Below the pieces are notes generated by a model that was not told the DNA's origin, ran no database searches, and was given only the letters and a program-made list of their open reading frames with translations. Shown here one piece after another: positions 3,801 through 50,879 of a stretch of DNA of 64,000 nucleotides. Location of the stretch: positions 558,001-622,000 of the forward strand of contig OX337230.1 in assembly GCA_946965045.2 (NCBI GenBank), read 5' to 3'. The DNA comes from Epithemia pelagica (taxonomy: Eukaryota; Protista; Bacillariophyta). The translations under genes and the position numbers were made by a program. Each line of letters begins with the position of its first letter. Within the stretch, counting starts at the first letter, position 1.

Positions 3801-4234
3801 GATTATTCAAAGATCTTTGTTCCGTTGGACATGCCAACTCAAGCCCAGAATGAAAAAAGATCTTTGAGATCTAGAATTTTTGCTGTGAAGTACACAATAG
3901 CCGCCAAGAATGAAAACGGTGTGTCTGTCAGTATCAGCTGAAAAGCAGTGGCGAGCCCAGCTTCAAACGTGCACCGTATTCTTGATCCAAACGCGTTTGA
4001 AGAGACACCTTCATTTCTCTCTCTTGTCCTTTGTGACGTCCATCTTTCTTTGGCAACAGACTGCCAGTGATGAGGTGAACAGACATGGATGATCAACAAA
4101 CCAACTCAATCATTGTGCATACAGCCATGAAATCCGATATGGTTGTCGGTTCTTTGCGGTATTCTCAAGGCGATTCATCCATTCAATGAGCCACACCAAA
4201 GATTACACCACTCAAAGAGGATTACATGTGAATA

Positions 4235-25714: not shown

Positions 25715-25742
25715 GTAGAATCATTTAACTATAGTAAAGACT

Positions 25743-28632: not shown

Positions 28633-29255
28633 ACTCGATCGAATGGGACGCCGTATTGTCTCTTTTCGATTGTTGAGTGATAGTTCGTCATGTTAAATCT
28701 TGAAGGAAGTTGTCTATTACGTTAACCATGCTTTTCCCACAAACATTCGAATACGTCACACAAACTTTCACACGGAAGTCATTTAAGTATGGGCTTGTAT
28801 GGAAATCCCGTAAAATTCTTGAAGTCTCTGGAACTTTCTATCTTCGACATAAGATCTCAGCATTCTTTCTCAGTCGCTGAAAAATAAAGTATATTGGTCG
28901 TGTTACAGTCGCTTTTGGTGAGTCAGTCATCGATGGAGTTGGAGATCGAATCTGACGAAAGATTCACACATCACTCAACTTCTTCGCTTTGCCTTTTGTC
29001 CAACGACACACATCATCTCACCACCGCAAAATCGTGATGGCCAAGAGCCTGGCTCAGTTTTTCTGTCGTACGCAAGAAATAGTTGGATATTGACCAGTTC
29101 CATATCTTTGTGGTGTTGGACGGACCAAGGAAACTTTTCAAGAGACCTCGTCTGTATCTCTTGCACGAGTTGCTTCATTCACTGCTGGAGATTGTTGGAC
29201 TTGACAGCATCGATTCGACGACTACAAGACTTGTTTGAACGCAATTGAACACAAG

Positions 29256-32200: not shown

Positions 32201-32433
32201 AGAAGATGGTGGAAGGCCGTATCCGTAAATACTTGCAAGAGATTTGTTTGGTGTCGCAACAGTATGTTAAGGATGGCGACAAGACCGTTGGCAAGTTGTT
32301 GGAAGAGAAGGGTGCCAAGATGAAGGGATTTACTCGCATTGCTGTTGGAGAAGGTATTGAAAAGAAGGAAGACAACTTTGCCGAAGAAGTTGCCAAAATG
32401 GCTGGAACTGCCCCCGAGCCTGTAGCCGCGTAG
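29256..32433 (+). CDS. tsf: Plastid-targeted protein with two tandem full-length EF-Ts units; introns 30856-30937 and 31946-32020 (1,006 aa)
   Basis: Signal peptide KILWFLTWTVAIEAA-F. Two copies of IKELRDNTGAGMMDCKKAL...EVNCETDFV...GEGIEKKEDNFAEEV. Both introns are GT-AG, phase 1, at the same codon (MNRIG/VLVE). Confidence 0.92.
29780..30330 (+). repeat. Coding tandem repeat (AEEERLAAEAAAK-type) forming a charged helical linker, including a 156-nt near-exact duplication
   Basis: About 13 EEERLAAE units; sequence at 29871 recurs at 30027. Confidence 0.85.
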
Positions 32434-33033: not shown

Positions 33034-35508
33034 TTACTGGACTTCTTCAATGGGTTCATCCATCGTAAGGGCGATATGTTGGGCTACCAAGGTACACGTT
33101 TGGTTGATTTGACTCTCCGACAAGATGCTTTCGTCATGACCGGGAACAATGATGCGGCGTACACCCACGTTGTTGTTGGTGGTGGTGCTTGCATTGTGGG
33201 CACTTGTCGGGACTTTTTCTTGTGGTGGTTGTTTCCATTGCACCAAGGGGGTAAAGACTTGACTGGCCGCCATGCTGGTAAAGGCTTGTTGATATTCCAG
33301 AACGAGGGCCGCGTCGTGCAAAAAGAGCAAGTGCGTCAATCCGGCACCATGATTGCCTATCAACACGTGAGATTGTCGCATCAACCGCAGCTGTTGCTCA
33401 AACGTCAAGGTTTCCAGGGCTACCAACTCGACCGATGTAATACTACCTGGAACACGTCCTTGTGTTTCTTGCAGGGCTTGTACCAAGGCGGGCAAATTGT
33501 GCAAGAATCGACGCGCTTTTTTGTCCGGGTTGGATCGCGGATGGGCCAGGTAGGGACGTCGATCAATCACAGTCACTTTGCCAGGAATCATGGTCACGTG
33601 TTGCAACTGGTACGCCGTCAGGACGTACTGAACAAAGGCATGCATCATACTGGGACAGACCTTCCAGGATTTCAAAGAAGAAGGAGATTGACTCTGACGC
33701 CACAAAACACTGGAGTATCCCGAAGGTATTAAGGTGACATTTCTGAGACAAACAACGGGTGAAATCTGCTGCTTGTCCTTAGTTTCTTGTTCTTGTTGTT
33801 TTTGTGGTTGGGACTCTCCCAACAAGAAGGACGATTGGATAAAGTAGGTGGGTCCAAACAATTGACGCCACACATCATCCAAGGCTCCTCGTGCATGACC
33901 ATCCAAAAATACAACGGAAACATTGAACACTGGTGAAGGATCCATGATAGTAGTAGGCGAGGGAGAGAGCGTCAAAAAGGTTTGAAACCAATCCATGACG
34001 GTGTGAAACAAGTTGCAATATTCGTAGCGAGTAATCATCAAGACACGCCCCGACAAATGGTGTGTACAGGCCACGGGATCCGGATCGTCCTTGTTGTGGA
34101 GGGACGACGACGACGACATGGATAAATTGTGGTTGGAATTTGTGGATTCCAAATGGCTACTATGAGCAACACTTGCAGACTGAAATGGGACCTCCAACTC
34201 ATCCTCTTTGACTGCTTTTGCTGCGACTGCTGCAGGATCGGTTGACGTACGAAGAATCGTCGAGTTCTTCTTATTCGTGGGTGCTGGCCCAAGATCCCAA
34301 ATTGCCAAATGATCCAAAACTTGCTGAATGTAAAAGAATTGGTCTCGATTTGTTGTTGTTGTTGTTGGTGGTGGTGTAGGTTCCTCGGAGGAGGTCGAGT
34401 TGTTCGTATCATCCACCAAACGACGCAAGGATGAGGATTCCGTAACATTCTGATGGCGATGCAACAACAAGACAAAGGCAGCTTCTGGTCGTCCTTGTTG
34501 AGAATCCCCATGGTGGTTTTGACGATTGTTGTGGCTACTATAAGTGTATTGCGGCAATTCCTCTTGTTCGTCACGACCCACGACAGACGAGACGGTTTCA
34601 TTGCCTCGTGCCTGCAGGGACAACAAGGCGACATGAATTTTCAATTCATTGTCATGACCAAACTGGCTATACGGAATATGTGTGAGGGCATGAACGCGAC
34701 ACCCCGTCATTCGTTCGAGGTTGTGGTTGTGGGTATTGTGGTGGCGGTGGTGGTGGTCCATTGGATGAAAGTGCACAGAGCACTGTCGATAATCGTCGAC
34801 ATGCTCCACGTCAATCAATCGAGGAGCTTTCCAGGAGTCGAGTTGATGGGGAGCAAGACGAAGAATGTTGTTGCCTCGTTGTCGTTGTTGGACGGAAACG
34901 ACCAGTTTGGTCTTGTGCTGGTGCGACGACGACGACGACGACGACTGAGCAAAAGAAGGCTGGGACGTGGGGATTTTGGACGGGGATGTGCGTGTAGTTG
35001 CCAGGGTGTTGTTGTTGCTGCTGCTGTTGTTGTTAGGGTTAGATGAGGATACTGCCGAATGGAACGACCGAGTACGACGAGGATATTCCGCTCTTCTTGT
35101 GGCAAGGTCTTTGGCATTGCGTTCTTTCATTCCATCCGTGTTCGGTTGGACGGCAGACCATACATTGGGTTGTGACATTGTGATTGTCTTGTTGGATGTT
35201 GTTTTTGTTTTTGTTGTTGTGGTGGTGGTGGTGGTGGTGGTTTGGTGAGATGGTGGTATGATGGACGGAGCAAAAGGCTGTTGAAACAGCAACATTGGAT
35301 AGAGATTCATCAACACTGTAGGGCAAAGGACCAAAACTAGGACCAGGAGAATGCATGTGGGAGCCTGTCGACAATGAGTGCGATGACGACGACGACGTCT
35401 TGAAAGGACACTGGAACGACGGACATGTGGTGAATGATGCAACCACTCGTCGGCAGTGTCTTGTTGGTTCCTCGAGCCGAAGGACGGCCGAGGTTGCAAA
35501 GGACTCAT
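33034..35508 (-). CDS. Glycosyltransferase family 61 (EOGT/xylosyltransferase-like), type II membrane protein
   Basis: N-terminal TM (ILLVLVLVLCPTVLM), ITRYEYCNLFHTVMDW, FLDGHARG, IDRRPY and LIGNHGAGLTHLLFL. Confidence 0.85.
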   Translation of the reverse strand: MSPLQPRPSFGSRNQQDTADEWLHHSPHVRRSSVLSRRRRRHRTHCRQAPTCILLVLVLVLCPTVLMNLYPMLLFQQPFAPSIIPPSHQTTTTTTTTTTKTKTTSNKTITMSQPNVWSAVQPNTDGMKERNAKDLATRRAEYPRRTRSFHSAVSSSNPNNNSSSNNNTLATTRTSPSKIPTSQPSFAQSSSSSSSHQHKTKLVVSVQQRQRGNNILRLAPHQLDSWKAPRLIDVEHVDDYRQCSVHFHPMDHHHRHHNTHNHNLERMTGCRVHALTHIPYSQFGHDNELKIHVALLSLQARGNETVSSVVGRDEQEELPQYTYSSHNNRQNHHGDSQQGRPEAAFVLLLHRHQNVTESSSLRRLVDDTNNSTSSEEPTPPPTTTTTNRDQFFYIQQVLDHLAIWDLGPAPTNKKNSTILRTSTDPAAVAAKAVKEDELEVPFQSASVAHSSHLESTNSNHNLSMSSSSSLHNKDDPDPVACTHHLSGRVLMITRYEYCNLFHTVMDWFQTFLTLSPSPTTIMDPSPVFNVSVVFLDGHARGALDDVWRQLFGPTYFIQSSFLLGESQPQKQQEQETKDKQQISPVVCLRNVTLIPSGYSSVLWRQSQSPSSLKSWKVCPSMMHAFVQYVLTAYQLQHVTMIPGKVTVIDRRPYLAHPRSNPDKKARRFLHNLPALVQALQETQGRVPGSITSVELVALETLTFEQQLRLMRQSHVLIGNHGAGLTHLLFLHDAALVLEYQQAFTSMAASQVFTPLVQWKQPPQEKVPTSAHNASTTTNNNVGVRRIIVPGHDESILSESQINQTCTLVAQHIALTMDEPIEEVQ

Positions 35509-36094
35509 TGTCAATTTATATTTTTGGGTGGTGTGTGTCGTTCGAATGCATGGGATAATTCCAGACGGGCATGTCGTTTGAGAGAGAGACCTCTTTTTCT
35601 TGGCTCTGTTCTTGAAAGTTGGGAGGACGACCACAAGAAGAGAACGGTCTCCTGGACGTGGATCGTCGATCGTCGCTCAATTTTTCGGGTGTGTGTAACG
35701 ATAATATGTCTGGACCTTGCAAAACATGAGAGGATATGGTTGGCCGTGCGCGTAACATGAGACGCGCGAGCATGTCAAATGGAGGCTTAACTATCAGCAC
35801 CTTTACGTCAGCCGGTGGGGATGCCTGCTGGTAAGAGCGCGCAGCGACATACATTCCCTCTCGATCTCGAGATCGCATATCGTCGAGTACTCTCACACAC
35901 ATCATGGACGCGTTTCTCTCTCGTGGAAACTACAGACCTTTTGTGCTCCCCCCTGCTTTCTCTCATGGCGAGTTTCTCAGACATAGCTAGTGAACGGTGA
36001 TCTCTAAAAATCGAATCATTGTTTCTCCTCAACAAGATGACTTTGAATTTACATGGCTAGAGTAAGCTTTTACGTAGCTCGCCGATATACCATA

Positions 36095-37758
36095 TTATAG
36101 TGCACCATACAACGACTCGGCGCTATTCAGTGTTGTCCCTTGTTGTCGTCGCCGTTGTGGCACGAAATGATGGCACGTGTTATTGATTTCGGCTTGCGAC
36201 AATTGCGTGGGACTTTCGGATCGAGATCGATGCAACAAGATGCGTTTCAGCCCTTGTACTGTCGTCGTCGTCGTCGTGGTTGTAGTAGTATTCGGATTGT
36301 CGCTGGGTGCGGGCAGTTTCCAATCGGCCAGTGCCCAGGAAAAACTATAGCCATTGGTCGTGTATTCGAGCATCATGGCATTCTGGGACAAGAAAATCAT
36401 GTGAACCATGCCCGCTCCGTGATTGCCAATCAAGACATGGGTTTGTCGCATCAAGGCCACTTGGTCGGCAAAACTCAGGGTTTCCAAGGCTACCAGCGTC
36501 ACATAGGTAACGCCCGGAACGTGGTGTTGCAAATGGTGGACCAAGTCGGGCAAATTGGTCAAGTAGCGGCGTTGTTTTGTGGCATTGATTTTGGTGCGGG
36601 GATGCGCCAAGTAGGGTCGACGATCAATAATGGTAATCTTGCCGGGAATCATGCGGAGGTGGGACAGGTCCAATCCGGCCACTACAAAATCCACAAAGGC
36701 ATGCATCATACTGGGACACTTGGTACCTTGTTTCCACAACGATTGACGTTTGGGATCCAAGACGGTCGCATATCCAGCCGGAATCAAGGTGGCATTGGAC
36801 AAACACACGACGGAATGTTGTTCTTGTTGTTGTGGTGGTGACACATGATTTGTCGGTGCGGATGCGGCACTCGTGGGAACCCCCGTAGCATTTGGTGTTG
36901 CCGGAAAGGACGACTTGATAAAGTAGGTGGGTCCAAACAATTGCCGCCAGGCCGGGTCCAGGGCTCCTTGGGCATGACCATCCAAGAAAATAATCGACAC
37001 GTTGTCGTCAGTGTCCTTGTCCTTGTTCTTGTGGGACAAGGACAAAAAGGGTGGTGCGGGGGACAGGGTCAAAAAGGTTTGGAACCAATCTCGAATGACA
37101 AAGTACACATTGCAATATTCGTATCGGGTAATCAACAAGACGCGTCCGGACACGTAATGGGTACACGCGTCGCTAGCAGCAGCAGTCGTTGTTGTTGTGG
37201 TAGTGGTGGTAGTGGTGGTAGTGGTGTCGGTTGTCGGAGAATTGTCATTTGTCTGCTGCACAATTTTCAAATGCTTCAAAATGTCGTTATTGTAATGAAA
37301 GTGTGGTCGTTCTTGTCCTTTTGGTTGCATTGGTGGACCTTGCTGGTACTGTTGGGAGAAGCCGCCGCTGCACGAATGATGAATCGACCATGAGGGCATC
37401 TCGTCGTTGTAGGGAAGAATAGGGATGGTGAAAAAAAGACGAAGGATTGATTGAGAGGTATCAGGACCGTGACAAAACACAAGAGCAGAAACAAACTCAA
37501 TCCATGGACGGACCGAATCCAGCCTGTCCAACATGATGATGATGATGACAAACTACTACTCTGCATCAATCGTTCTTGGAGCGTTGTTGCATGTCGGAAA
37601 TGAGGATGAGGAGGGAGGTGACGGTGGTATCCGTTGTTCGGAAGCAGGAGAGGAGGAGGAGGTGGTGTGACGATCTGGAAGAGGTGGATGAGAGTGTTCG
37701 TGAAAGATTGAGACGTTGCTGGGAGCTCCGACCATGGAGGGCGATTCTTTCTCAGCAA
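36095..37758 (-). CDS. Second GT61 paralogue, shortened, with a frame discontinuity near 37280-37350 (possible pseudogene)
   Basis: Catalytic part (ITRYEYCNVY, FLDGHAQG, IDRRPY, LIGNHGAGMVHMIFL) lies in ORF 36095-37534, while the TM-anchor-like N-terminus (GLSLFLLLCFVTVLIP) lies in a different frame (37276-37758). Confidence 0.65.
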
Positions 37759-38648
37759 CAGTACGAGGATTCTTGGGACTGATCGTCGACTTCTTTGTCA
37801 TGGTGGTGTGCATATTTGGAGAAGAGTAACTCTCCTTCCGATCTTCTTCTTCTTCTTCCTTTGCCGGACGAAGTGGGTGTCGAATGAATGAGAGAAACCC
37901 TGGAACACCCAAGATTGTTGGGGTCATCCACAGATTCCTCTTTGTTTTCGCAAAATGTGGATAAACGCCGATCTTGACCAAAAGTTTGAGTTGAGAGCTG
38001 GGCCGATGTCTCATCACGACTAAATGGATACGGTGAGCGACGTTTACTTAAACATAACGCTTTGGCTGTTAAAGGGACAGTAATATTTTTTGACTTATTG
38101 CTATAGAGTTCGATGTACATAAAATACGAGTAATCGAAATAAAGGGAACGATTCAAGAGGTGTATATTTGAAAAGAGTGTGTCATTCCCAAACCCCTATA
38201 TCGGGCGATACGATGGGTAGCTATTGCTCTTACATGTACTCCTACTTTTCCGCCTCAAGTGCGATTCATACGAGACTTTACAAAGATCCTTACTCCCAAG
38301 CGTACTGATGAGTCACGCTCATGATTAAGAAATTTGTACATTCAATTACTGACGATGAATCACGATCATTCATGACTCACTCAATGATGCGCTAGGGAGT
38401 ACAAAGATCCGCACATCTGGGGAGGTTCCATCACCGTTGCCAGCTGCTGTGCCATCCAAAAAGGATTCTTTTTCCAGATGCCAACAAACACAGACACACA
38501 CACGTCAAAGGAGTCTGTATCGTTGGTTCCTTGTTTCGTGTGTGTTTGGGACCCTAATAGAGACAAAGATACCAAGCATCATCCAACAAACCAGACGCAT
38601 TCTCCGGCAATCTCTCAAAAGCCGACGACACACTACTATATCAACAGG

Positions 38649-41600
38649 ATGGTGATACTGAGCACCGCCTTTGGTCCAAGACAGGGTCCATCGCTTCGGC
38701 GCATCCAAACCAGATATCCAAATGTCGTTTGTCACCACCGGAATGGATTCCTACTACTACTTCTCCTTTGTTTCTCTCGGTGGTGGTTGCTTCTTGGGAC
38801 CGCCCCCACAACAACAAGAATGATGCTGCTGGTCTCTGCCTTTTCGACGACAACAACAACCACAACTCTACAGACTCCTCTTGGTGTGTCTCGCCGTCGC
38901 CCACTCCAACCAATCACGACACTGACCAGAACAACCAGAGAACGACCAACAAGGGGTGGCAAATTGTCTCGCGACAGGATTGTTTTGTGGGACAGCAACA
39001 AGTCTCCCTCCTTTCCCTTTTTTCAATCGGACGAAGTGGGCGACGACGATGAATATGACGACGCATTTGACGAATATGACGACGACAACGACTCGGCTGC
39101 TTCCAAAAGTAGCAGTAGTTCGACGACTCCTCGTACGTCGGTACGATTGCAAGATTTGGCCCGAGAATGGGCCGCTCGCAATTTGGAGACCCAATCGGAA
39201 CGAAAACACAAGGAATCACCCAAAACCATGTCCTCCTCCAGTGCCTCCTTTTTTGCGTCTTCTGCTTCCACAACGTCGTCCAAACCACCTCGAGGGGCAT
39301 CGTCCTCATCGTCTTCGTTCAAGGGTACGGGCAGCAACCGTCCCAAGACTCCTTCTCCTCCTCCTCCTCGTGATCCAGGCATGCCACCGGGTGGTTATAG
39401 TTTTGGATCCATGGAGTATCATCCCGACATGGGAGATTCATCCTCCTCCTCCTCTTCATCGTCGTCACCCTTTGGAAAAATGCAACTGGAATCCTATGCG
39501 ACGGTTCAACAATGGGTCATGGGAGGAGATACACCCACATCAACGAGCAGCAGCATGAAGAAACAGACATCTTCCCCCACAACCATGAGCAGTGTGACAC
39601 GTCGAACCTTTTCCGTCCCTCCCATTGCCGCTCATCATCCTTACCGGCCAGCACGAGGAGGTTCGTCGTTGACCAGTAAGACGGTTCCGGCGTCGCCTCC
39701 GGCACCACGTCCACCATCCACCACCACAAAAACCACAACAACGACCATGGACGATTTGACACGACAATGGTCGTCGCACCGTCCTCCGTCCGACGACACT
39801 GGGAAACGAGCCGATTATGCTCCCACCACGATCCAATACGACATGGCCGATCCTCCGGAACGATCCAGTAGTAGTAGTTCCAACGACAACGACGACAACA
39901 AACCGAAGGAGGACCAGCCGTCCTCGGCTGCCACCAGGTCGGAAACACCCCGACCATCGGTCCCATCGCCAACACAATCCAATGTCAAGAACACCACGTT
40001 GGAGGAACTTGCCACGGAGTGGGGATCCAGGAATCAGGATTCCAAAGAGGAAACGACCACCATGCCACCCACACAAGTATTTGTGTCGACACCACCAACA
40101 ACAACAACCACGCCAGTGCCAACTCCTTCATCAAAAACACCGACTGTTTCCAGCAATGTTTTGGAACAACTTGCCATGGCATGGACCACCACAAATCAAG
40201 CTCACGAGGAACACACGACAATGCCACCGACACAGGCCTTTGCATCCGACAAAGCACCAGTACCATCGGTAACGACGACACCGGAACTACCCAGTGCCGA
40301 AACGTTGGAGGAATTTGCCACGACGTGGGGATCCATGAATCAGGATTCACAAGAGGAAAAGACCACCATGCCGCCCACACAAGCATTTGTGTCGACATCA
40401 CAAACAATAACGACGCCAGTGCCAACTCGTTCACCAAAAAAACCGCCAGTTTCCAGCAATGTCCTGGAACAACTTGCCATGGCATGGACCACCACAAACC
40501 AAGATCATGAGGACAAAACGACAATGCCACCGACACAGTCCTTTACATCGACACCCACAATTGCATCCGAGGAAGCACCAGTACCATCGGCAACGACGAC
40601 ACCGGAACTACCAAGTGCCGAAAAGTTGGAGGAACTTGCCACGGCGTGGGGATCCATGAATCAGGATTCAAAAGAGGAAAGGACCACAATGCCACCTTCA
40701 CACGTATTTGTGTCTACACCACCAACAACAACGCCAGTGACAGCTCAAGTACCATCACCAAAGACATCGACGGTCTCCAGTAATGTTTTGGAACAACTTG
40801 CCATGGCATGGACCACCACAAATCGAGATCATGAGGACAAAACGACAATGCCACCGACACAGGCCTTTACATCGACACCCACAATTGCATCCGAGGAAGC
40901 ATCAGTACCATCGGTAACGACGACACCGGAACTACCAAGTGCCGAAAAGTTGGAGGAACTTGCCACGGCGTGGGGATCCATGAATAAGGATTCACAGGAG
41001 GAAAAGATCACCATGCCACCCACACAAGCATTTGCGTCTACACCGACAACAACAACCCCGCCAGTGACAACTCCTTCATCAAAAACACCGACAGTTTCCA
41101 GCAATGTTTTGGAACAACTTGCCATGGCATGGACAAGGACAAATCAAGATCATGAGGACAAAACGACAATGCCACCGACACAGGCCTTTACATCGACACC
41201 CACAATTGCATCCCAGGAAGCACCAGTACATTCAAAGGTTACTACGACACCGGAACTACCCAGTGCCAAAAAATTGGAGGAACTTGCCGCAGCGTGGGGA
41301 TCCATGAATCAGGATTCACAAGAGGAAAGGACCACCATGCCACCTTCACACGCATTTGTGTCTACACCACCACCAACAACGCCAGTGACAGCTCCAGTAC
41401 CATCACCAAAGACACCGACGGTCTCCAGCAATGTTTTGGAACAACTTGCCATGGCATGGACCACCACAAATCAAGATCATGAGGAACAAACGACAATGCC
41501 ACCGACACAGGCCTTTGAGTCCGCACCCACAACGACGTCCGAGGAAACTGGCGTAACATCGATCAAAGCTTCGGAAAAATCAAGTCCCAACAAATTGGAG

Positions 41601-44600
41601 GAACTTGCCACGGCGTGGGGATCGAGGAATCAGGATTCGGAAGAGGAACGGACGGCCATGCCACCCACACAAGCCTTTGACTCCCCACCATCATTGACAA
41701 AAGCACCTTCAGTGTCCACTCCAGGACCAAAGAAGCCGACAGTCTCCAGCAACATCCTGGAAAGACTTGCCATGGCATGGACGACCACAAATCAAGATCA
41801 CGACGACAAAACGACAATGCCACCCACACATGCCTTTGTATCAACAGCGACTGCGACAATGCCCAAGGAAACTGTAATGCCAACACCCGTAGCCCCTGTT
41901 CCTGTGTCGTCCACAGCATCCACAATGGATGATCTTGCGGAGGCATGGAAAACAACCAACCAAGATAACGACGATGACAAAGAGGCAACTGTACCAACCA
42001 CACAAGCGTTTGCATCTGTTCCGACAATGGCAGCCACGGAAATTCCAGTTCCATTGGTTTCTACGCCGCCCGAAGTATCCAGTGCCAAGTTGGAGGAACT
42101 TGCCACTGAATGGGAAACCATGAATCAGGATCGAAAAGAGGAAACAACAGCCATGCCACCCACGCAGGCATTTGCCTCTACACACAAAACGACAAAAGCA
42201 CTTCCAGTGCCAACTCCAGTACCAGCACCAAAGAAGACACCGAAAGTCTCCCATAATGTCATGGATAAACTTGCCATGGCATGGACAACCACAAATCAGG
42301 ATACCACAGACACGACGACAATGCCACCGACTAAGGCCTTTGAGTCCGTACCCACAACTACATCCAAGGAAACACCAGTACCATCATTGGTTAGTACGAC
42401 ACCCGAAGTACACAGTGCTAAGTTGGATGAGCTTGCAACGGCCTGGGGATCCATGAATAAGGATTTGGAAGGGGAAAGAACCACCATGCCACCCACACAA
42501 GCATTTGACTCCCCACCGACAACAAAAACAACGCCAGAGACAACTCCAGCACTAGCACCAAAGTCGCAAACAGTCTCGAGTAATGTTCTGGAAAAACTCG
42601 CCATGGCGTGGACAACCACAAATCAAGATCACGAGGAAACGACGGCAATGCCACCGACTCAGGCGTTTGCATCCATTCCCACCGCGAAAAGACCCGAGTT
42701 ACCTGCAGTACCAACACCGGTAGCTCCTGTACCAACGCCTGTGACGCCTGTATCATTAACAGTATCAATGGATCAGCTTGCGGCGGCATGGAAAACAACC
42801 AATCAAAATCACGACGAAAAGGCGACAATGCCACCATCGCATGTCTTTGCCTCCACAACGACAGCGACACCCATGGAAACACCAGTACCATCTATTGCGA
42901 CAACGGAACGAGGAATTACCAATTTGTCGGGTGAACTGGCCACGGCGTGGGGTTCCATGAATAAGGATCATAAAGATGAAACGACAACCATGCTTCCAAA
43001 ACACCCCGTTGGGTCCACGCCGACGACGGCGACAACAACCCCAGTGCTTACACCAAAGGCAACTCAACCACCAACACCGCAAACACCTGCTGTATCTTTT
43101 GGTCATGCCATGGAGAAACTTGCGGCTGCATGGGGATTAATGAATCAAGATAAAAGTGATAAGGTGACAATGCTACCAACAGAAGTCTCTGCATCCCCGC
43201 CGAAAGAGTCCATGGCACACCCAGTACCAGATACGCCACAAACTTTGGTACCAACGCCACCGTCGCCAAGGTCATCCGCAGTTTCAATAGATCATCTCAC
43301 GACTGCATGGGGATCCATGAATCAAGATCACGACGACACGTCATCCATGCCTCCAACTCAAGCATTTAGCTCAAAGCCCTCTACACCAGTGTCAACTCCA
43401 GTACCAGCACCCAAACCACCTGTTATTTCAAGTGTCGACCTAGATCAACTAGCTGTTGCATGGGGATCCATGAATCAAGATCACGACGACACGTCATCCA
43501 TGCCTCCAACTCAAGCATTTAGCTCAAAGCCCTCTACACCAGTGTCAACTCCAGTACCAGCACCCAAACCACCTATTATTTCAAGTGTCGACCTAGATCA
43601 ACTAGCTGTTGCATGGGGATCCATGAATCAAGATCACGACGACACGTCATCCATGCCTCCAACTCAAGCATTTAGCTCAAAGCCCTCTACACCAGTGTCA
43701 ACTCCAGTACCAGCACCCAAACCACCTGTTATTTCAAGTGTCGACCTAGATCAACTAGCGGTTGCATGGGGATCCATGAATCAAGATCACGACGACGGGT
43801 CAACCATGCCACCAACACAAGCATTCATACAAAATCAAGCGACGCCTTATCAGCACGAAACAAAGCTGTCACCAACTTCACCCGCCGACGGAACGTCTAA
43901 ACAAGTCACACCTAACCAATCTTCATCTTCGTCGACGCCAAAATCCACAACTAGCACCAACTCAAAAAATGTACTCAACAATATTTTCGAAAATATCGCA
44001 AATATATGGGGATCGATGAATCAAGATGAGGACACGAGTTCGACAATGCCACCTACAGCCGCCTTTGTTACGTCTGCACCAGCGACGCCTCCTACACCAG
44101 CAACAGTCAAGGAAAGTGCCAAACCAGCAGAACCGCCAGTGGTGTCGTCCGCGACAATGGATCAATTGGCAACGCAATGGGGATCTATGGGATCTATGAC
44201 TCAAGATGAGGACACGAGTTCGACAATGCCACCTACAGCCGCCTTTGTTACGTCTGCACCAGCGACGCCTACTACACCAGCAACAATCAAGGAAAGTGCC
44301 AAACCAGCAGAACCGCCAGTGGTGTCGTCCGTGACAATGGATCAATTGGCAACGCAATGGGGATCTATGAATCAAGATGAGGACACGAGTTCGACAATGC
44401 CACCTACAGCCGCCTTTGTTACGTCTGCACCAGCGACGCCTCCTACACCAGCAACAATCAAGGAAAGTGCCAAACCAGCAGAACCGCCAGTGGTGTCGTC
44501 CGTGACAATGGATCAATTGGCAACGCAATGGGGATCTATGAATCAAGATGAGGACACGAGTTCGACAATGCCACCTACAGCCGCCTTTGTTACGTCTGCA

Positions 44601-47600
44601 CCAGCGACACCTCCTACACCAGCAACAATCAAGGAAAGTGCCAAACCAGCAGAACCGCCAGTGGTGTCGTCCGTGACAATGGATCAATTGGCAACGCAAT
44701 GGGGATCAATGACTCAAGATGAGGACACGAGTTCGACAATGCCACCTACAGCCGCCTTTGTTACGTCTGCACCAGCGACGCCTACTACACCAGCAACAAT
44801 CAAGGAAAGTGCCACACCAGCAGAACCGCCAGTGGTGTCGTCCGTGACAATGGATCAATTGGCAACGCAATGGGGATCTATGGGATCTATGACTCAAGAT
44901 GAGGACACGAGTTCGACAATGCCACCTACAGCCGCCTTTGTTACGTCTGCACCAGCGACGCCTACTACACCAGCAACAATCAAGGAAAGTGCCAAACCAG
45001 CAGAACCGCCAGTGGTGTCGTCCGTGACAATGGATCAATTGGCAACGCAATGGGGATCTATGAATCAAGATGAGGACACGAGATCGACAATGCCACCTAC
45101 AGCCGCCTTTGTTACGTCTGCACCAGCGACGCCTCCTACACCAGCAACAATCAAGGAAAGTGCCAAACCAGCAGAACCGCCAGTGGTGTCGTCCGTGACA
45201 ATGGATCAATTGGCAACGCAATGGGGATCTATGAATCAAGATGAGGACACGAGTTCGACAATGCCACCTACAGCCGCCTTTGTTACGTCTGCACCAGCGA
45301 CACCTCCTACACCAGCAACAATCAAGGAAAGTGCCAAACCAGCAGAACCGCCAGTGGTGTCGTCCGTGACAATGGATCAATTGGCAACGCAATGGGGATC
45401 AATGACTCAAGATGAGGACACGAGTTCGACAATGCCACCTACAGCCGCCTTTGTTACGTCTGCACCAGCGACGCCTACTACACCAGCAACAATCAAGGAA
45501 AGTGCCACACCAGCAGAACCGCCAGTGGTGTCGTCCGTGACAATGGATCAATTGGCAACGCAATGGGGATCTATGGGATCTATGACTCAAGATGAGGACA
45601 CGAGTTCGACAATGCCACCTACAGCCGCCTTTGTTACGTCTGCACCAGCGACGCCTACTACACCAGCAACAATTAAGGAAAGTGCCAAACCAGCAGAACC
45701 GCCAGTGGTGTCGTCCGTGACAATGGATCAATTGGCAACGCAATGGGGATCTATGAATCAAGATGAGGACACGAGTTCGACAATGCCACCTACAGCCGCC
45801 TTTGTTACGTCTGCACCAGCGACGCCTACTACACCAGCAACAATCAAGGAAAGTGCCAAACCAGCAGAACCGCCAGTGGTGTCGTCCGTGACAATGGATC
45901 AATTGGCAACGCAATGGGGATCTATGAATCAAGATGAGGACACGAGTTCGACAATGCCACCTACAGCCGCCTTTGTTACGTCTGCACCAGCGACGCCTCC
46001 AACACCAGCAACAATCAAGGAAAGTGCCAAACCAGCAGAACCGCCAGTGGTTTCGTCCGTGACAATGGATCAATTGGCAACGCAATGGGGATCTATGAAT
46101 CAAGATGAGGACACGAGTTCGACAATGCCACCTACAGCCGCCTTTGTTACGTCTGCACCAGCGACGCCTACTACACCAGCAACAATCAAGGAAAGTGCCA
46201 AACCAGCAGAACCGCCAGTGGTGTCGTCCGTGACAATGGATCAATTGGCAACGCAATGGGGATCTATGAATCAAGATGAGGACACGAGTTCGACAATGCC
46301 ACCTACAGCCGCCTTTGTTACGTCTGCACCAGCGACGCCTCCTACACCAGCAACAATCAAGGAAAGTGCCAAACCAGCAGAACCGCCAGTGGTGTCGTCC
46401 GTGACAATGGATCAATTGGCAACGCAATGGGGATCTATGAATCAAGATGAGGACACGAGTTCGACAATGCCACCTACAGCCGCCTTTGTTACGTCTGCAC
46501 CAGCGACGCCTCCTACACCAGCAACAATCAAGGAAAGTGCCAAACCAGCAGAACCGCCAGTGGTGTCGTCCGTGACAATGGATCAATTGGCAACGCAATG
46601 GGGATCTATGAATCAAGATGAGGACACGAGTTCGACAATGCCACCTACAGCCGCCTTTGTTACGTCTGCACCAGCGACGCCTCCAACACCAGCAACAATC
46701 AAGGAAAGTGCCAAACCAGCAGAACCGCCAGTGGTTTCGTCCGTGACAATGGATCAATTGGCAACGCAATGGGGATCTATGAATCAAGATGAGGACACGA
46801 GTTCGACAATGCCACCTACAGCCGCCTTTGTTACGTCTGCACCAGCGACGCCTACTACACCAGCAACAATCAAGGAAAGTGCCACACCAGCAGAACCGCC
46901 AGTGGTGTCGTCCGTGACAATGGATCAATTGGCAACGCAATGGGGATCTATGGGATCTATGACTCAAGATGAGGACACGAGTTCGACAATGCCACCTACA
47001 GCCGCCTTTGTTACGTCTGCACCAGCGACGCCTACTACACCAGCAACAATCAAGGAAAGTGCCAAACCAGCAGAACCGCCAGTGGTTTCGTCCGTGACAA
47101 TGGATCAATTGGCAACGCAATGGGGATCTATGAACAAAGATGAGGACCCGAGTTCGACAATGCCACCTACAGCCGCCTTTGTTACGTCTGCACCAGCGAC
47201 GCCTCCTACACCAGCAACAATCAATGAAAGTGCCAAACCAGCAGAACCGCCAGTGGTGTCGTCCGTGACAATGGATCAATTGGCAACGCAATGGGGATCT
47301 ATGAATCAAGATGAGGACACGAGTTCGACAATGCCACCTACAGCCGCCTTTGTTACGTCTGCCACAGCGACGCCTCCTACACCAGCAACAATCAAGGAAA
47401 GTGCCAAACCAGCAGAACCGCCAGTGGTGTCGTCCGTGACAATGGATCAATTGGCAACGCAATGGGGATCTATGAATCAAGATGAGGACACGAGTTCGAC
47501 AATGCCACCTACAGCCGCCTTTGTTACGTCTGCACCAGCGACGCCTCCTACACCAGCAACAATCAAGGAAAGTGCCAAACCAGCAGAACCGCTAGTGGTT

Positions 47601-50600
47601 TCGTCCGTGACAATGGATCAATTGGCAACGCAATGGGGATCTATGAATCAAGATGAGGACAAGAGTTCGACAATGCCACCTACAGCCGCCTTTGTTACGT
47701 CTGCACCAGCGACGCCTACTACACCAGCAACAATCAAGGAAAGTGCCAAACCAGCAGAACCGCCAGTGGTTTCGTCCGTGACAATGGATCAATTGGCAAC
47801 GCAATGGGGATCTATGACTCAAGATGAGGACCCGAGTTCGACAATGCCACCTACAGCCGCCTTTGTTACGTCTGCACCAGCGACGCCTCCTACACCAGCA
47901 ACAATCAAGGAAAGTGCCACACCAGCAGAACCGCCAGTGGTGTCGTCCGTGACAATGGATCAATTGGCAACGCAATGGGGATCTATGGGATCTATGACTC
48001 AAGATGAGGACACGAGTTCGACAATGCCACCTACAGCCGCCTTTGTTACGTCTGCACCAGCGACGCCTACTACACCAGCAACAATCAAGGAAAGTGCCAA
48101 ACCAGCAGAACCGCCAGTGGTTTCGTCCGTGACAATGGATCAATTGGCAACGCAATGGGGATCTATGAACAAAGATGAGGACCCGAGTTCGACAATGCCA
48201 CCTACAGCCGCCTTTGTTACGTCTGCACCAGCGACGCCTCCTACACCAGCAACAATCAATGAAAGTGCCAAACCAGCAGAACCGCCAGTGGTGTCGTCCG
48301 TGACAATGGATCAATTGGCAACGCAATGGGGATCTATGAATCAAGATGAGGACACGAGTTCGACAATGCCACCTACAGCCGCCTTTGTTACGTCTGCCAC
48401 AGCGACGCCTCCTACACCAGCAACAATCAAGGAAAGTGCCAAACCAGCAGAACCGCCAGTGGTGTCGTCCGTGACAATGGATCAATTGGCAACGCAATTG
48501 GGATCTATGAATCAAGATGAGGACACGAGTTCGACAATGCCACCTACAGCCGCCTTTGTTACGTCTGCACCAGCGACGCCTCCTACACCAGCAACAATCA
48601 AGGAAAGTGCCAAACCAGCAGAACCGCTAGTGGTTTCGTCCGTGACAATGGATCAATTGGCAACGCAATGGGGATCTATGAATCAAGATGAGGACACGAG
48701 TTCGACAATGCCACCTACAGCCGCCTTTGTTACGTCTGCACCAGCGACGCCTCCTACACCAGCAACAATCAAGGAAAGTGCCAAACCAGCAGAACCGCCA
48801 GTGGTGTCGTCCGTGACAATGGATCAATTGGCAACGCAATGGGGATCTATGACTCAAGATGAGGACCCGAGTTCGACAATGCCACCTACAGCCGCACTTT
48901 TTTCGTCTGCACCAGCGACGCCTCCTACACCAGCAACAATCAAGGAAAGTGCCAAACCAGCAGAACCGCCAGTGGTGTCGTCCGTGACAATGGATCAATT
49001 GGCAACGCAATGGGGATCTATGAATCAAGATGAGGACACGAGTTCGACAATGCCACCTACAGCCGCCTTTGTTACGTCTGCACCAGCGACGCCTCCTACA
49101 CCAGCAACAATCAAGGAAAGTGCCAAACCAACAGAACCGCTAGTGGTTTCGTCCGTGACAATGGATCAATTGGCAACGCAATGGGGATCTATGAATCAAG
49201 ATGAGGACAAGAGTTCGACAATGCCACCTACAGCCGCCTTTGTTACGTCTGCACCAGCGACGCCTCCTACACCAGCAACAATCAAGGAAAGTGCCAAACC
49301 AGCAGAACCGCCAGTGGTGTCGTCCGTGACAATGGATCAATTGGCAACGCAATGGGGATCTATGACTCAAGATGAGGACCCGAGTTCGACAATGCCACCT
49401 ACAGCCGCACTTTTTTCGTCTGCACCAGCGACGCCTCCTACACCAGCAACAATCAAGGAAAGTGCCAAACCAGCAGAACCGCCAGTGGTGTCGTCCGTGA
49501 CAATGGATCAATTGGCATCGCAATGGGGATCTATGAATCAAGATGAGGACACGAGTTCGACAATGCCACCTACAGCCGCCTTTGTTTCGTCTGCACCAGC
49601 GACACCTCCTACACCAGCAACAATCAAGGAAAGTGCCAAACCAGCAGAACCGCCAGTGGTGTCGTCCGTGACAATGGATCAATTGGCATCGCAATGGGGA
49701 TCTATGAATCAAGTTGAGGACACGAGTTCGACAATACCACCTACAGCCGCCTTTGTTACGTCTGCACCAGCGACGCCTCCTACACCAACAACAATTTCAA
49801 GTCCCTCTAATGCAGCTTTCAGCAAGGAAATGCCAAAGCCCCTCGAAGTCCGTGGTGCTGTGCCAGTTTCGAAGGATTCAGGTACTTCGACGGTCAACGA
49901 TGAAGGAAGAGTTTCTTCAAGGAATAAGGAAAGTTTGAAGGATGCTTCAGGCAAGGTCGACTCACAATTTTCGCCTGGTGATTTCGCATCTATTGGAACA
50001 CCGAATAAGAAGACAGTCTCTGACAAGGATGGAAGCAAGGCAGTGACGAGATCTTTTCCATTGGGAGAAAGCAAGAGGAAGGTTCCAGATAGTGCTGCAT
50101 CTCCACCAAAGAAATCGTTTACGACATTTGATGAATTTGATGAGTCGGAAGAAGAAGCAAGTGTCTTGTTGCCTCTTGTGTTGACGATTGGATTTTCGGT
50201 CGGACTGTCTCTCCTGGCCTTGCTGCCTCTGGGAATGATTGATTTGTTTTCCGAGTCCAGGAACGCGGGACCCATTGTGCCCGCCACGACCACACGCGTC
50301 GAACCTAGTGTCAAGGGTGGTAGGAGTGAAACCAAATCGTCGGGTGCCTTGTCGAAAGAGTTGGACAAGGACAGAATATCACAAGACATGATAAAGACAG
50401 CAAAGGGTGATGCAACGAAAGCAGACGAAGCAGAAGCGGGGGAGCCGAAATCAGAAGCGGAGAATCAAGGCACAGTCTCAGCCAAGAAGTCAACACGACC
50501 CGCCCAAAAGAAACCATCCAAACCACCCAAACCAGATCCAGCCACACAACGGGCTCTCCGAAAACAGGCCCAACAAGAGCGGGCAACCACACAAGCCAAA

Positions 50601-50879
50601 AAGGTGCAGGATCGAAAAGATGCGGTACAATCCAAAAAGGCGGAACAGGCCAGAATCGTCTCCCAAGCACTCAAGGCCGAACAAGACCGATTGACACCCA
50701 AACCAAAGTCATTACCACCACCACCACCAACGAAAACATCCACGACAAATGTGGTGGAAGATAACAAGAAAGGACTAGACACAACAACACTGAACCAGCA
50801 ACAGCCGCAACCACAACAAGATGATGATTCCGCTCCTCAAACATTTGAGGATGCCATATGGCAATATGTAAATAAGTAG
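38649..50879 (+). CDS. Giant (~4,076 aa; ORF open from 38478) repeat protein: plastid-type presequence, ~60 LAxxWGSMNQD-type motifs, C-terminal TM helix; candidate pyrenoid Rubisco-binding tether
   Basis: One uninterrupted ORF. Hydrophobic segment followed by LVSA-FSTT (F at 38841) and an S/T/R-rich transit-like region. TM VLLPLVLTIGFSVGLSLLALLPLGMI at ~50163-50240, then a K/Q/R-rich tail. The coding call is strong; the functional call is inference. Confidence 0.85.
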   Translation: MVILSTAFGPRQGPSLRRIQTRYPNVVCHHRNGFLLLLLLCFSRWWLLLGTAPTTTRMMLLVSAFSTTTTTTTLQTPLGVSRRRPLQPITTLTRTTRERPTRGGKLSRDRIVLWDSNKSPSFPFFQSDEVGDDDEYDDAFDEYDDDNDSAASKSSSSSTTPRTSVRLQDLAREWAARNLETQSERKHKESPKTMSSSSASFFASSASTTSSKPPRGASSSSSSFKGTGSNRPKTPSPPPPRDPGMPPGGYSFGSMEYHPDMGDSSSSSSSSSSPFGKMQLESYATVQQWVMGGDTPTSTSSSMKKQTSSPTTMSSVTRRTFSVPPIAAHHPYRPARGGSSLTSKTVPASPPAPRPPSTTTKTTTTTMDDLTRQWSSHRPPSDDTGKRADYAPTTIQYDMADPPERSSSSSSNDNDDNKPKEDQPSSAATRSETPRPSVPSPTQSNVKNTTLEELATEWGSRNQDSKEETTTMPPTQVFVSTPPTTTTTPVPTPSSKTPTVSSNVLEQLAMAWTTTNQAHEEHTTMPPTQAFASDKAPVPSVTTTPELPSAETLEEFATTWGSMNQDSQEEKTTMPPTQAFVSTSQTITTPVPTRSPKKPPVSSNVLEQLAMAWTTTNQDHEDKTTMPPTQSFTSTPTIASEEAPVPSATTTPELPSAEKLEELATAWGSMNQDSKEERTTMPPSHVFVSTPPTTTPVTAQVPSPKTSTVSSNVLEQLAMAWTTTNRDHEDKTTMPPTQAFTSTPTIASEEASVPSVTTTPELPSAEKLEELATAWGSMNKDSQEEKITMPPTQAFASTPTTTTPPVTTPSSKTPTVSSNVLEQLAMAWTRTNQDHEDKTTMPPTQAFTSTPTIASQEAPVHSKVTTTPELPSAKKLEELAAAWGSMNQDSQEERTTMPPSHAFVSTPPPTTPVTAPVPSPKTPTVSSNVLEQLAMAWTTTNQDHEEQTTMPPTQAFESAPTTTSEETGVTSIKASEKSSPNKLEELATAWGSRNQDSEEERTAMPPTQAFDSPPSLTKAPSVSTPGPKKPTVSSNILERLAMAWTTTNQDHDDKTTMPPTHAFVSTATATMPKETVMPTPVAPVPVSSTASTMDDLAEAWKTTNQDNDDDKEATVPTTQAFASVPTMAATEIPVPLVSTPPEVSSAKLEELATEWETMNQDRKEETTAMPPTQAFASTHKTTKALPVPTPVPAPKKTPKVSHNVMDKLAMAWTTTNQDTTDTTTMPPTKAFESVPTTTSKETPVPSLVSTTPEVHSAKLDELATAWGSMNKDLEGERTTMPPTQAFDSPPTTKTTPETTPALAPKSQTVSSNVLEKLAMAWTTTNQDHEETTAMPPTQAFASIPTAKRPELPAVPTPVAPVPTPVTPVSLTVSMDQLAAAWKTTNQNHDEKATMPPSHVFASTTTATPMETPVPSIATTERGITNLSGELATAWGSMNKDHKDETTTMLPKHPVGSTPTTATTTPVLTPKATQPPTPQTPAVSFGHAMEKLAAAWGLMNQDKSDKVTMLPTEVSASPPKESMAHPVPDTPQTLVPTPPSPRSSAVSIDHLTTAWGSMNQDHDDTSSMPPTQAFSSKPSTPVSTPVPAPKPPVISSVDLDQLAVAWGSMNQDHDDTSSMPPTQAFSSKPSTPVSTPVPAPKPPIISSVDLDQLAVAWGSMNQDHDDTSSMPPTQAFSSKPSTPVSTPVPAPKPPVISSVDLDQLAVAWGSMNQDHDDGSTMPPTQAFIQNQATPYQHETKLSPTSPADGTSKQVTPNQSSSSSTPKSTTSTNSKNVLNNIFENIANIWGSMNQDEDTSSTMPPTAAFVTSAPATPPTPATVKESAKPAEPPVVSSATMDQLATQWGSMGSMTQDEDTSSTMPPTAAFVTSAPATPTTPATIKESAKPAEPPVVSSVTMDQLATQWGSMNQDEDTSSTMPPTAAFVTSAPATPPTPATIKESAKPAEPPVVSSVTMDQLATQWGSMNQDEDTSSTMPPTAAFVTSAPATPPTPATIKESAKPAEPPVVSSVTMDQLATQWGSMTQDEDTSSTMPPTAAFVTSAPATPTTPATIKESATPAEPPVVSSVTMDQLATQWGSMGSMTQDEDTSSTMPPTAAFVTSAPATPTTPATIKESAKPAEPPVVSSVTMDQLATQWGSMNQDEDTRSTMPPTAAFVTSAPATPPTPATIKESAKPAEPPVVSSVTMDQLATQWGSMNQDEDTSSTMPPTAAFVTSAPATPPTPATIKESAKPAEPPVVSSVTMDQLATQWGSMTQDEDTSSTMPPTAAFVTSAPATPTTPATIKESATPAEPPVVSSVTMDQLATQWGSMGSMTQDEDTSSTMPPTAAFVTSAPATPTTPATIKESAKPAEPPVVSSVTMDQLATQWGSMNQDEDTSSTMPPTAAFVTSAPATPTTPATIKESAKPAEPPVVSSVTMDQLATQWGSMNQDEDTSSTMPPTAAFVTSAPATPPTPATIKESAKPAEPPVVSSVTMDQLATQWGSMNQDEDTSSTMPPTAAFVTSAPATPTTPATIKESAKPAEPPVVSSVTMDQLATQWGSMNQDEDTSSTMPPTAAFVTSAPATPPTPATIKESAKPAEPPVVSSVTMDQLATQWGSMNQDEDTSSTMPPTAAFVTSAPATPPTPATIKESAKPAEPPVVSSVTMDQLATQWGSMNQDEDTSSTMPPTAAFVTSAPATPPTPATIKESAKPAEPPVVSSVTMDQLATQWGSMNQDEDTSSTMPPTAAFVTSAPATPTTPATIKESATPAEPPVVSSVTMDQLATQWGSMGSMTQDEDTSSTMPPTAAFVTSAPATPTTPATIKESAKPAEPPVVSSVTMDQLATQWGSMNKDEDPSSTMPPTAAFVTSAPATPPTPATINESAKPAEPPVVSSVTMDQLATQWGSMNQDEDTSSTMPPTAAFVTSATATPPTPATIKESAKPAEPPVVSSVTMDQLATQWGSMNQDEDTSSTMPPTAAFVTSAPATPPTPATIKESAKPAEPLVVSSVTMDQLATQWGSMNQDEDKSSTMPPTAAFVTSAPATPTTPATIKESAKPAEPPVVSSVTMDQLATQWGSMTQDEDPSSTMPPTAAFVTSAPATPPTPATIKESATPAEPPVVSSVTMDQLATQWGSMGSMTQDEDTSSTMPPTAAFVTSAPATPTTPATIKESAKPAEPPVVSSVTMDQLATQWGSMNKDEDPSSTMPPTAAFVTSAPATPPTPATINESAKPAEPPVVSSVTMDQLATQWGSMNQDEDTSSTMPPTAAFVTSATATPPTPATIKESAKPAEPPVVSSVTMDQLATQLGSMNQDEDTSSTMPPTAAFVTSAPATPPTPATIKESAKPAEPLVVSSVTMDQLATQWGSMNQDEDTSSTMPPTAAFVTSAPATPPTPATIKESAKPAEPPVVSSVTMDQLATQWGSMTQDEDPSSTMPPTAALFSSAPATPPTPATIKESAKPAEPPVVSSVTMDQLATQWGSMNQDEDTSSTMPPTAAFVTSAPATPPTPATIKESAKPTEPLVVSSVTMDQLATQWGSMNQDEDKSSTMPPTAAFVTSAPATPPTPATIKESAKPAEPPVVSSVTMDQLATQWGSMTQDEDPSSTMPPTAALFSSAPATPPTPATIKESAKPAEPPVVSSVTMDQLASQWGSMNQDEDTSSTMPPTAAFVSSAPATPPTPATIKESAKPAEPPVVSSVTMDQLASQWGSMNQVEDTSSTIPPTAAFVTSAPATPPTPTTISSPSNAAFSKEMPKPLEVRGAVPVSKDSGTSTVNDEGRVSSRNKESLKDASGKVDSQFSPGDFASIGTPNKKTVSDKDGSKAVTRSFPLGESKRKVPDSAASPPKKSFTTFDEFDESEEEASVLLPLVLTIGFSVGLSLLALLPLGMIDLFSESRNAGPIVPATTTRVEPSVKGGRSETKSSGALSKELDKDRISQDMIKTAKGDATKADEAEAGEPKSEAENQGTVSAKKSTRPAQKKPSKPPKPDPATQRALRKQAQQERATTQAKKVQDRKDAVQSKKAEQARIVSQALKAEQDRLTPKPKSLPPPPPTKTSTTNVVEDNKKGLDTTTLNQQQPQPQQDDDSAPQTFEDAIWQYVNK
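43317..43790 (+). repeat. Three near-identical 153-nt coding repeats (51 aa)
   Basis: MNQDHDD ATGs at 43317, 43470, 43623 and 43776. Confidence 0.9.
44016..49790 (+). repeat. 34-unit coding tandem array, 171-nt (57-aa) unit, five units with an extra 9 nt (GSM)
   Basis: Unit starts step by 171 or 180 nt from 44016 to 49704. Unit: MNQDEDTSSTMPPTAAFVTSAPATPPTPATIKESAKPAEPPVVSSVTMDQLATQWGS. Confidence 0.95.

Follow-up and report, generated by a model that had tools for sequence, protein, structure and literature searches.

The window, a 64,000-nt stretch of DNA from the diatom Epithemia pelagica (assembly GCA_946965045.2, contig OX337230.1, positions 558,001 to 622,000 of the forward strand), contains a single giant open reading frame (ORF), the only one of such size in it. 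An initial annotation, made from the letters alone, had suggested that the encoded protein (hereafter the giant) carries some 60 copies of a Rubisco-binding helix and is fastened to a plastid membrane. From its sequence the giant is a strong candidate for fastening the pyrenoid matrix to a plastid membrane, and we lean, at somewhat better than an even chance, towards the whole reading that it is a membrane-anchored Rubisco-binding plastid protein. Anchoring in the pyrenoid-penetrating thylakoid specifically, which is argued by analogy, is less probable than the reading as a whole. As far as its sequence tells, the giant uses a sticker that is already known, but its architecture, extreme and membrane-anchored, is new, and it belongs to an undescribed family of plastid proteins.

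The repeated helix matches the large-subunit motif of PYCO1

For PYCO1, the linker of Phaeodactylum tricornutum, a model from cryo-electron microscopy (cryo-EM) places residues 577-585 (AAEWGSMNQ), folded as a helix, into a hydrophobic cleft on the Rubisco large subunit (RbcL). W580 occupies a pocket lined by F102, F104, L361, F366 and F482, and N584 forms a hydrogen bond with Y89. PYCO1 has another large-subunit motif, ASEWASMNT, at 532-540 (Oh et al. 2023, PMC10288592); the motif can be written as LAxEW[GA]SMN[QT]. The AAEWGSMNQ-like, large-subunit-binding sticker that the initial annotation had given for PYCO1 agrees with the published one.

We used the C-terminal 67 aa of PYCO1 with both large-subunit motifs, taken from the supplement of Oh et al., as the query in BLASTP. 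In the alignment (E=2e-9, 33-35% identity), the two motifs fell in register on two consecutive units of the giant, and PYCO1 ASPAPASSAY came to lie opposite SSMPPTQAF of the giant. The RbcL contacts of PYCO1, the Trp and the Asn at +4, are the best conserved sticker positions in the giant. By our own estimate from amino-acid frequencies, a match to the eight specified residues of LAxxWGSMNQ is expected by chance ~1e-4 times per diatom-sized proteome. By its sequence, the repeated helix of the giant is the same motif as PYCO1 577-AAEWGSMNQ-585.

The strings KWSP, WSP and GTGYNP/GYNP occurred nowhere in the giant ORF, in line with the earlier remark that it has no KWSP-type small-subunit sticker. 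Because KWSP and GTGYNP are missing, the giant is, on sequence grounds, not a PYCO1 orthologue. A sequence search of the PDB with the unit profile returned no PYCO1 chain; its hits were chance matches, e.g. the MPPTQSF peptide of ERRFI1. The accessible part of the Rubisco co-immunoprecipitation tables of Oh et al. listed no peptide of the giant or of the related protein B7GCF0 (see below); the tables concern a different species and are uninformative in this respect.

A bipartite unit is repeated about 60 times, with purifying selection on its two short elements

We found 59 Trp-centred units of the form [LIMF][ATS]xxW and one Trp-to-Leu variant, 60 in all, with a spacing of 48-60 aa; the earlier count had been about 60 helical Trp motifs every 50-57 aa or so. 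Where the spacing seems to be interrupted, over 114 and 137 aa, one degenerate unit is present in each case (W1491 and W1844, respectively). In the profile search of protein databases (see below), 58 unit stretches were counted in the giant. WGSMNQ is exact in 28 units and LAxxWGSMNQ in 25, and the Asn at W+4 is retained in 48 of the 59. At the DNA level, three arrays were detected: 321 bp x5 (84% matches), 153 bp x3.4 (97%) and 171 bp x33.6 (96%). Such a pattern cannot have arisen by chance.

Each unit consists of a 14-19-aa amphipathic helix, [LM][DE]xLAxxW[GT][ST][MT]NQD, followed by a few acidic residues, the element TMPPTxAF and a P/T/S/A spacer of ~25-30 aa. In the unit alignment (A1), the Trp was invariant, and L-4, A-3, N+4 and D+6 were at least 90% conserved, as were the M, P, P and F of TMPPTxAF. 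AlphaFold2 (AF2), run on aa 657-1018 without an alignment, placed seven 13-19-aa helices exactly on the seven motifs, with coil between them, at low confidence (mean predicted local distance difference test score, pLDDT, 35). The second element follows every helix (39981-49800) after 4-6 acidic residues, and its counterpart in the paralogue P0002 is STMPPVAA.

The array has an older and a younger part (Table 1). The older part includes five 321-bp double units, in which WGSMNQ-type helices alternate with WTTTNQ-type helices (40240-41837), as well as three 153-bp units (43304-43825). Of the two degenerate stickers in front of it, the W231 unit matched the first sticker of a relative, P0003 (E=3e-4).

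We compared the older units by the ratio of nonsynonymous to synonymous differences per site (pN/pS). The helix block gave 0.25-0.31, at a pS of ~0.4-0.5, and TMPPTxAF gave 0.15, a stronger constraint than on the helix. The spacer blocks gave 0.75-0.98 in ungapped comparisons, in which misalignment may inflate the values. These results indicated that purifying selection acts on the helix and TMPPTxAF, and not on the P/T/S-rich spacers. The spacers evolve close to neutrality. The same values show that the giant ORF is coding.

The sticker defines a small family of diatom proteins with plastid-type presequences

Oh et al. remarked in passing that other proteins contain variants of the large-subunit helix (PMC10288592). 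We scored a 38-aa profile of the unit against 1.84 billion representative proteins (cut-off E<1e-3). The unit was carried by 19 of them, the giant included. The named carriers belong to Entomoneis, Epithemia and Phaeodactylum only, and the rest include environmental sequences; among the sources are Entomoneis paludosa, Epithemia clementina and a second ENA diatom assembly. Two paralogues, P0002 (1882 aa, 17 stickers) and P0010 (1030 aa, ~6 stickers), lie on another contig of the same assembly. B7GCF0 of P. tricornutum belongs to one of the clusters; in full length this protein (P0030) carries a coiled coil besides its four YGNLAKEWASMNRED stickers.

We collected 111 distinct motif instances from the other 18 proteins, which gave the consensus S-M-[DE]-[DQ]-L-A-[RK]-E-W-[AGS]-[AS]-[MR]-N-[KRQ]-[DE]. 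Asn at +4 was present in 84 of these instances and an acidic residue at +6 in 86, neither position having been used in their selection. In all 13 complete N-termini among the hits and their cluster-mates, F (10), Y (2) or L/F (1) stood directly behind a segment resembling a signal peptide, as in TA↓F or in the canonical presequences GA↓FAP of P0002 and QA↓FS of P0010. The cleavage sites were chosen by eye, and ten Phe at this position were judged to be far beyond chance. By their sequence, these presequences with F/Y/L at +1 are the diatom plastid-import signature.

In eight family members, as in PYCO1, a sticker forms the very C-terminus. P0002 and P0010 have the giant's sticker and an ASAF-type presequence, to which the candidate presequence of the giant would correspond, and P0002 also has the TMPP element; both lack a transmembrane (TM) helix, and a sticker closes them. 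Only the giant and P0003 were found to have a TM helix C-terminal to their stickers. P0003 (704 aa, from a transcript-like Logan contig) has a TA↓F presequence, a single TM helix past its stickers and the end PQTFEE, and so repeats the giant's layout of presequence, stickers and TM helix in miniature, although with only ~5 stickers. Word-indexed homologue searches with P0003 returned no relatives. A search of the ESM Atlas with the C-terminus of the giant gave a best score of 0.68, which is not meaningful, and two metagenome locus scans produced pattern matches, none of which held up by tblastn.

Other sequence elements were noticed in the family. P0017 (L004:2001-2951), from another diatom assembly (ENA ERZ25042306), is PYCO1-like: it has 'PKSYSMSWWDP' elements, comparable with KNYSMVKWSP of PYCO1, and three large-subunit stickers, the last of them at the C-terminus. 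A recurrent module of ~30 aa, KVAAMAEAGKSRWGAMENQKAQ, with the variants ETRWGVLETDKAAAE and ARWGVLETLRAQ, was seen in P0007, P0015, P0002, P0010 and P0011 (e.g. L001:6001-11649) and occurs more than 20 times in a 2928-aa Entomoneis protein; it is absent from the giant and may be a second kind of sticker. A C-terminal VRP[AS]FLD[TN]LGR[IV] is common to P0004, P0006 and P0018/P0040 and marks another subgroup of sticker proteins.

The giant could also be a plastid protein whose helix, with TMPPTxAF, binds a partner other than RbcL, such as the PyShell lattice, another sticker protein or the giant itself; its array would then organise something else than Rubisco. The large-subunit motif of PYCO1 bound weakly in vitro, no partner is known for the more constrained TMPPTxAF, WTTTNQ replaces WGSMNQ in half of the older units, and the chain is strongly acidic, all of which would suit such a partner. 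However, the sole experimental datum for the motif is density on RbcL, and the RbcL-contacting Trp and Asn at +4 are exactly the residues that the family conserves. We regard a partner other than RbcL as quite improbable, the least likely of the readings considered here.

Presequence, membrane anchor and tail of the giant

The hydrophobic window of the presequence (aa 91-109) starts 33 aa past M58, the likely start codon, and is broken by an Arg. A candidate cleavage site, VSA↓F, lies at aa 119-122, and an alternative, GTA↓P, 11 aa upstream. The SA-F end of the annotated signal peptide corresponds to VSA↓F, but this putative signal peptide is atypical and its cleavage site is ambiguous. The transit-like region annotated behind it was confirmed as a T/R-rich stretch nearly without acidic residues (aa 122-175).

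The one TM helix and the basic tail of the earlier description were both recovered; the tail is mildly basic and helical (Table 1). The charge around the TM helix is acidic before and basic after it. Within the tail, a 52-aa helix spans aa 4021-4072 (50538-50693; AF2 pLDDT 82-94). The tail ends in a short helix, PQTFEDAIWQYVNK (50835-50876), followed by the stop codon, and has PQTFE near its C-terminus, as does P0003. No Pfam match was obtained in the N-terminal, repeat or C-terminal parts of the giant. The mature protein would have a mass of ~420 kDa.

Start codon and transcription

The ~4,100-aa ORF at 38478-50879 of the initial annotation held as one frame, but its first 57 codons are probably not coding. 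DNA-like sequencing runs from the same organism contained an alternative haplotype with insertions of 3 bp at 38489 and 7 bp at 38513, which shift the frame. In X4, a run taken as RNA from its coverage pattern and not from its record, depth was zero over 37991-38581, and beginning at 38685 the ORF was covered piecewise at a depth of 2-6. M58 (38649) is the first ATG past the stretch without X4 coverage and has A at -3 and G at +4. Because of the haplotype frameshift, the gap in X4 depth and this sequence context, M58 is the likely start, giving a precursor of ~4,076 aa. The haplotype differences 3' of M58, read by eye, are conservative (A>T, Q>H and L>I). In one DNA-like run, the 5' end (38413-38795) showed nine substitutions beside the +3 and +7 bp insertions, a case of heterozygosity or strain variation.

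A silent locus had been named as grounds for dropping the proposal. With X4 reads over the ORF, the locus appears to be transcribed at a low level; of the words sampled from the gene's unique 3' end, X4 contained 38% and a marine metatranscriptome 6%. The depth of X4 on the proximal upstream neighbour gene was 33.

Two candidate features were rejected. A 342-bp 'joint' (38502>38845) in the DNA-like runs was treated as a repeat artefact, with one side matching 21 letters only. Long antisense ORFs within the array (e.g. 45399-47480, minus strand) are by-products of stop-free repeats.

Table 1. Features of the giant gene and of neighbouring ORFs (positions in the window).
Feature	Position	Strand	Remarks
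Giant ORF	38478..50879	+	4133 codons/aa, single ORF
ORF extension 5' of the likely start	38478..38648	+	Probably 5' untranslated region or promoter, non-coding
Signal-peptide-like region, M58-A121	38649..38840	+	Hydrophobic core aa 91-109, short patch MMLLV, candidate site VSA↓F
Transit-peptide-like stretch, aa 122-175	38841..39002	+	26% T, 17% R, net charge +8
S/P/T-rich N-terminal region with acidic patch and two degenerate stickers	39003..39977	+	W231: LQDLAREWAARN; W431: MDDLTRQWSSHR
Older, diverged part of array, ~26 units	39978..44117	+	Helix pN/pS 0.25-0.31, TMPPTxAF 0.15
Young array, 33.6 copies of the 171-bp (57-aa) unit, 96% identical	44006..49795	+	Higher-order blocks
Non-repeat juxtamembrane region, aa 3791-3893	49848..50156	+	Ends in acidic patch DEFDESEEEA
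Single TM helix, aa 3894-3920	50157..50237	+	Kyte-Doolittle 2.29; AF2 helix pLDDT 73-83
C-terminal tail, K/Q/A/P-rich	50238..50879	+	Net +9 over 208 aa (3926-4133)
Two tandem GT61 glycosyltransferase-domain ORFs, upstream, divergent to the giant	33034-35634, 36095-37534	-	Domain match
Two adjacent ORFs with three EF-Ts domain matches	29235-32433	+

Neighbouring genes

The proximal GT61 ORF (36095-37534) had a higher depth than the giant gene in X4. The two ORFs with EF-Ts domains probably belong, as exons, to a single gene for a multi-domain EF-Ts polyprotein, because their best matches are proteins of 596-853 aa in Nitzschia and MMETSP diatoms; the best named matches are from Nitzschia inconspicua (69%), Cylindrotheca and Entomoneis, which places the source among the raphid pennate diatoms. 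At 24398-27062, a DDE_Tnp_4 (Harbinger-type) transposase ORF on the minus strand lies beside a DUF6818 ORF on the plus strand, likely a transposable element. For an ORF at 53137-54768 (plus strand), a novel STAND NTPase family gave a weak match that stayed under the gathering cut-off.

A membrane-anchored Rubisco binder and the alternatives

We propose that the giant is made from a nuclear gene and that its ER signal peptide and transit-like stretch would bring it into the secondary plastid. The mature protein would be an intrinsically disordered chain with ~60 bipartite units, each helix binding RbcL weakly, as in PYCO1, and ~60 of them per chain giving high avidity. The unit period of 48-60 aa fits the ~60 aa expected of Rubisco linkers. 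The C-terminal TM helix would fix the chain to a plastid membrane as a Rubisco-binding brush, which may attach or nucleate the pyrenoid matrix there. By analogy with Chlamydomonas RBMP1/RBMP2, the most attractive candidate membrane is the pyrenoid-penetrating thylakoid. The tail across the membrane, with its long basic helix and PQTFE end, presumably meets another partner.

Several observations weigh against this proposal. Binding by the large-subunit motif of PYCO1 was so weak that Rubisco did not shift in native gels (Oh et al., PMC10288592). The presequence of the giant is non-canonical, with a 33-aa n-region, an Arg within the h-region and a distance of 12 aa from the h-region to SA↓F. Cleavage could fall at GTA↓P or at VSA↓F, and if it fell at GTA↓P, stromal import would not be predicted. 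With a pI of 4.5 and a net charge of about -200, the mature chain is strongly acidic, unlike the basic EPYC1 and PYCO1. Searches for Rubisco linkers often look for soluble, basic proteins, whereas the giant is acidic and has one predicted TM helix. Ten units of the young array are without the Asn at W+4 (WGSMTQ, or WGSMGSMTQ after a GSM duplication) and one has W>L; because these contact residues were lost, the effective valency may be below 60. The young array is also almost neutral (pN/pS 0.73), and expression looks low, with an X4 depth of 2-6 vs 33 for the adjoining gene. Outside the stickers, the similarity of P0003 to the giant is not significant (MPPGG, WVMG and PQTFE give E=0.6-2.7), so that the resemblance there appears to be architectural only. 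Word-indexed searches with the anchor-plus-tail piece returned no relatives. Finally, the mucin-like composition, the GT61 genes and the charge around the TM helix also fit other readings, as follows.

The composition (~16-18% T, 13-15% P and 11-13% S) would suit a secretory type I mucin or adhesive membrane protein with a huge O-glycosylated P/T/S ectodomain and a basic tail in the cytoplasm, in which the W-helix would be a general interaction module that has nothing to do with Rubisco. So would the acidity of the ectodomain, the positive charges that follow the TM helix, the long tail helix, the ambiguous signal peptide cleavage site, the lack of any Pfam domain in the giant and the two divergent GT61 ORFs directly upstream. 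The giant does have P/T/S tandem repeats and a type I layout. Selection, however, acts on the helix and TMPPTxAF and not on the PTS spacers that would bear the glycans, and no mucin, adhesin or GDPH-type domain was among the Pfam results. Moreover, the helix equals the motif that cryo-EM shows bound to RbcL, the stretch after SA↓F is transit-like (T/R-rich, net +8), and all 13 relatives with complete N-termini have a plastid-type F/Y/L at +1. Because selection ignores the PTS spacers and every relative's presequence is of plastid type, we hold a mucin to be unlikely, and rank it second among the alternatives.

The alternative that we rank first, itself unlikely, is that the giant binds Rubisco in the plastid in another role than as a tether on the penetrating thylakoid. 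Its anchor could sit in the inner envelope or the bulk thylakoid, or the giant could mainly act as a super-valent scaffold, a nucleator or a Rubisco sink, or have an unstable TM anchor. The sticker and presequence evidence serves this reading equally well, and no sequence feature specifies the membrane. The basic residues that follow the TM helix fit poorly with the simplest, stroma-positive thylakoid topology, in which the N-terminus is in the stroma. On the other hand, there is no positive sign for another membrane either, and the precedent, Chlamydomonas RBMP1/2, sits on traversing membranes.

A broader view of the family is possible, although we hold it only tentatively and below even chance. 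Raphid pennate diatoms may use the W-helix, S-M-[DE]-x-L-A-x-x-W-[GAS]-[AS]-[MR]-N-x-D, as their general motif for binding Rubisco and for targeting the pyrenoid, an RbcL-directed counterpart, in the red lineage, of the Chlamydomonas motif. It would be common to PYCO1, coiled-coil proteins and other plastid proteins that often end in it; the 60-valent anchored member would be the organiser that sets the place of matrix condensation, and TMPPTxAF would be a second contact.

These data bear on two questions, namely how the diatom Rubisco matrix is held on the traversing thylakoid and how proteins are directed to the diatom pyrenoid. The giant and the 19-member family turn the passing remark of Oh et al. 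into a concrete hypothesis, with a defined motif and two predicted contacts, a set of probably plastid-targeted carriers, one of them in the transformable P. tricornutum (the B7GCF0 locus, P0030), and a 60-sticker anchored extreme. If it is true, the red lineage arrived at motif-based assembly of pyrenoids by convergent evolution, and the family would offer parts for engineering condensates of form ID Rubisco.

Comparison with known systems

In the literature searched, the motif strings were found only in the PYCO1 paper, bar one unrelated tick-antigen paper that matches one string. Reviews as of 2026 name PYCO1 as the sole Rubisco linker of diatoms, absent from centric diatoms, and reviews to that year make no mention of such membrane-anchored multi-sticker proteins.

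The giant resembles PYCO1 in the LAxxWGSMNQ helix with its Trp and Asn at +4, in motifs 45-57 aa apart, in disordered spacers and possibly in a plastid presequence. In the diatom family, too, the motif often stands at the extreme C-terminus, as it does in PYCO1. The giant differs in having 60 large-subunit stickers, whereas PYCO1 has two, and in lacking the KWSPR(GGS) small-subunit and GTGYNP homotypic stickers; it is also acidic and has a TM anchor, a tail and the extra conserved TMPPTxAF.

Chlamydomonas RBMP1 and RBMP2 are membrane proteins with an EPYC1-type Rubisco-binding motif (Meyer et al. 2020), and the RBMP analogy of the initial annotation fits this literature as far as the account in the review PMC10473226 goes. 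In both systems, a linker's sticker appears to recur on a protein with a TM segment, whose proposed role is to hold the Rubisco matrix on the membranes that traverse it, and in the giant, too, a predicted TM segment and a putative Rubisco-binding motif stand in one polypeptide. This is an analogy and not homology: there is no sequence relationship, and the Chlamydomonas motif binds the small subunit, RbcS, whereas the giant's matches an RbcL binder. RBMP2 has a rhodanese domain, while the giant has one TM helix, no Pfam domain and ~60 motifs.

EPYC1 has five stickers and CsLinker six, and those linkers are soluble, whereas the giant has ~60, is acidic (pI 4.5) and is predicted to be membrane-anchored. 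With EPYC1, CsLinker and SUPA1 the giant shares short helical stickers that alternate with disordered spacers at a period of ~50-60 aa; tandem units of ~40-80 aa with a structured sticker and a disordered spacer are typical of the linker class, and those of the giant measure 48-60 aa. CsLinker, like the RbcL-directed motif that the giant appears to repeat, is also an RbcL binder.

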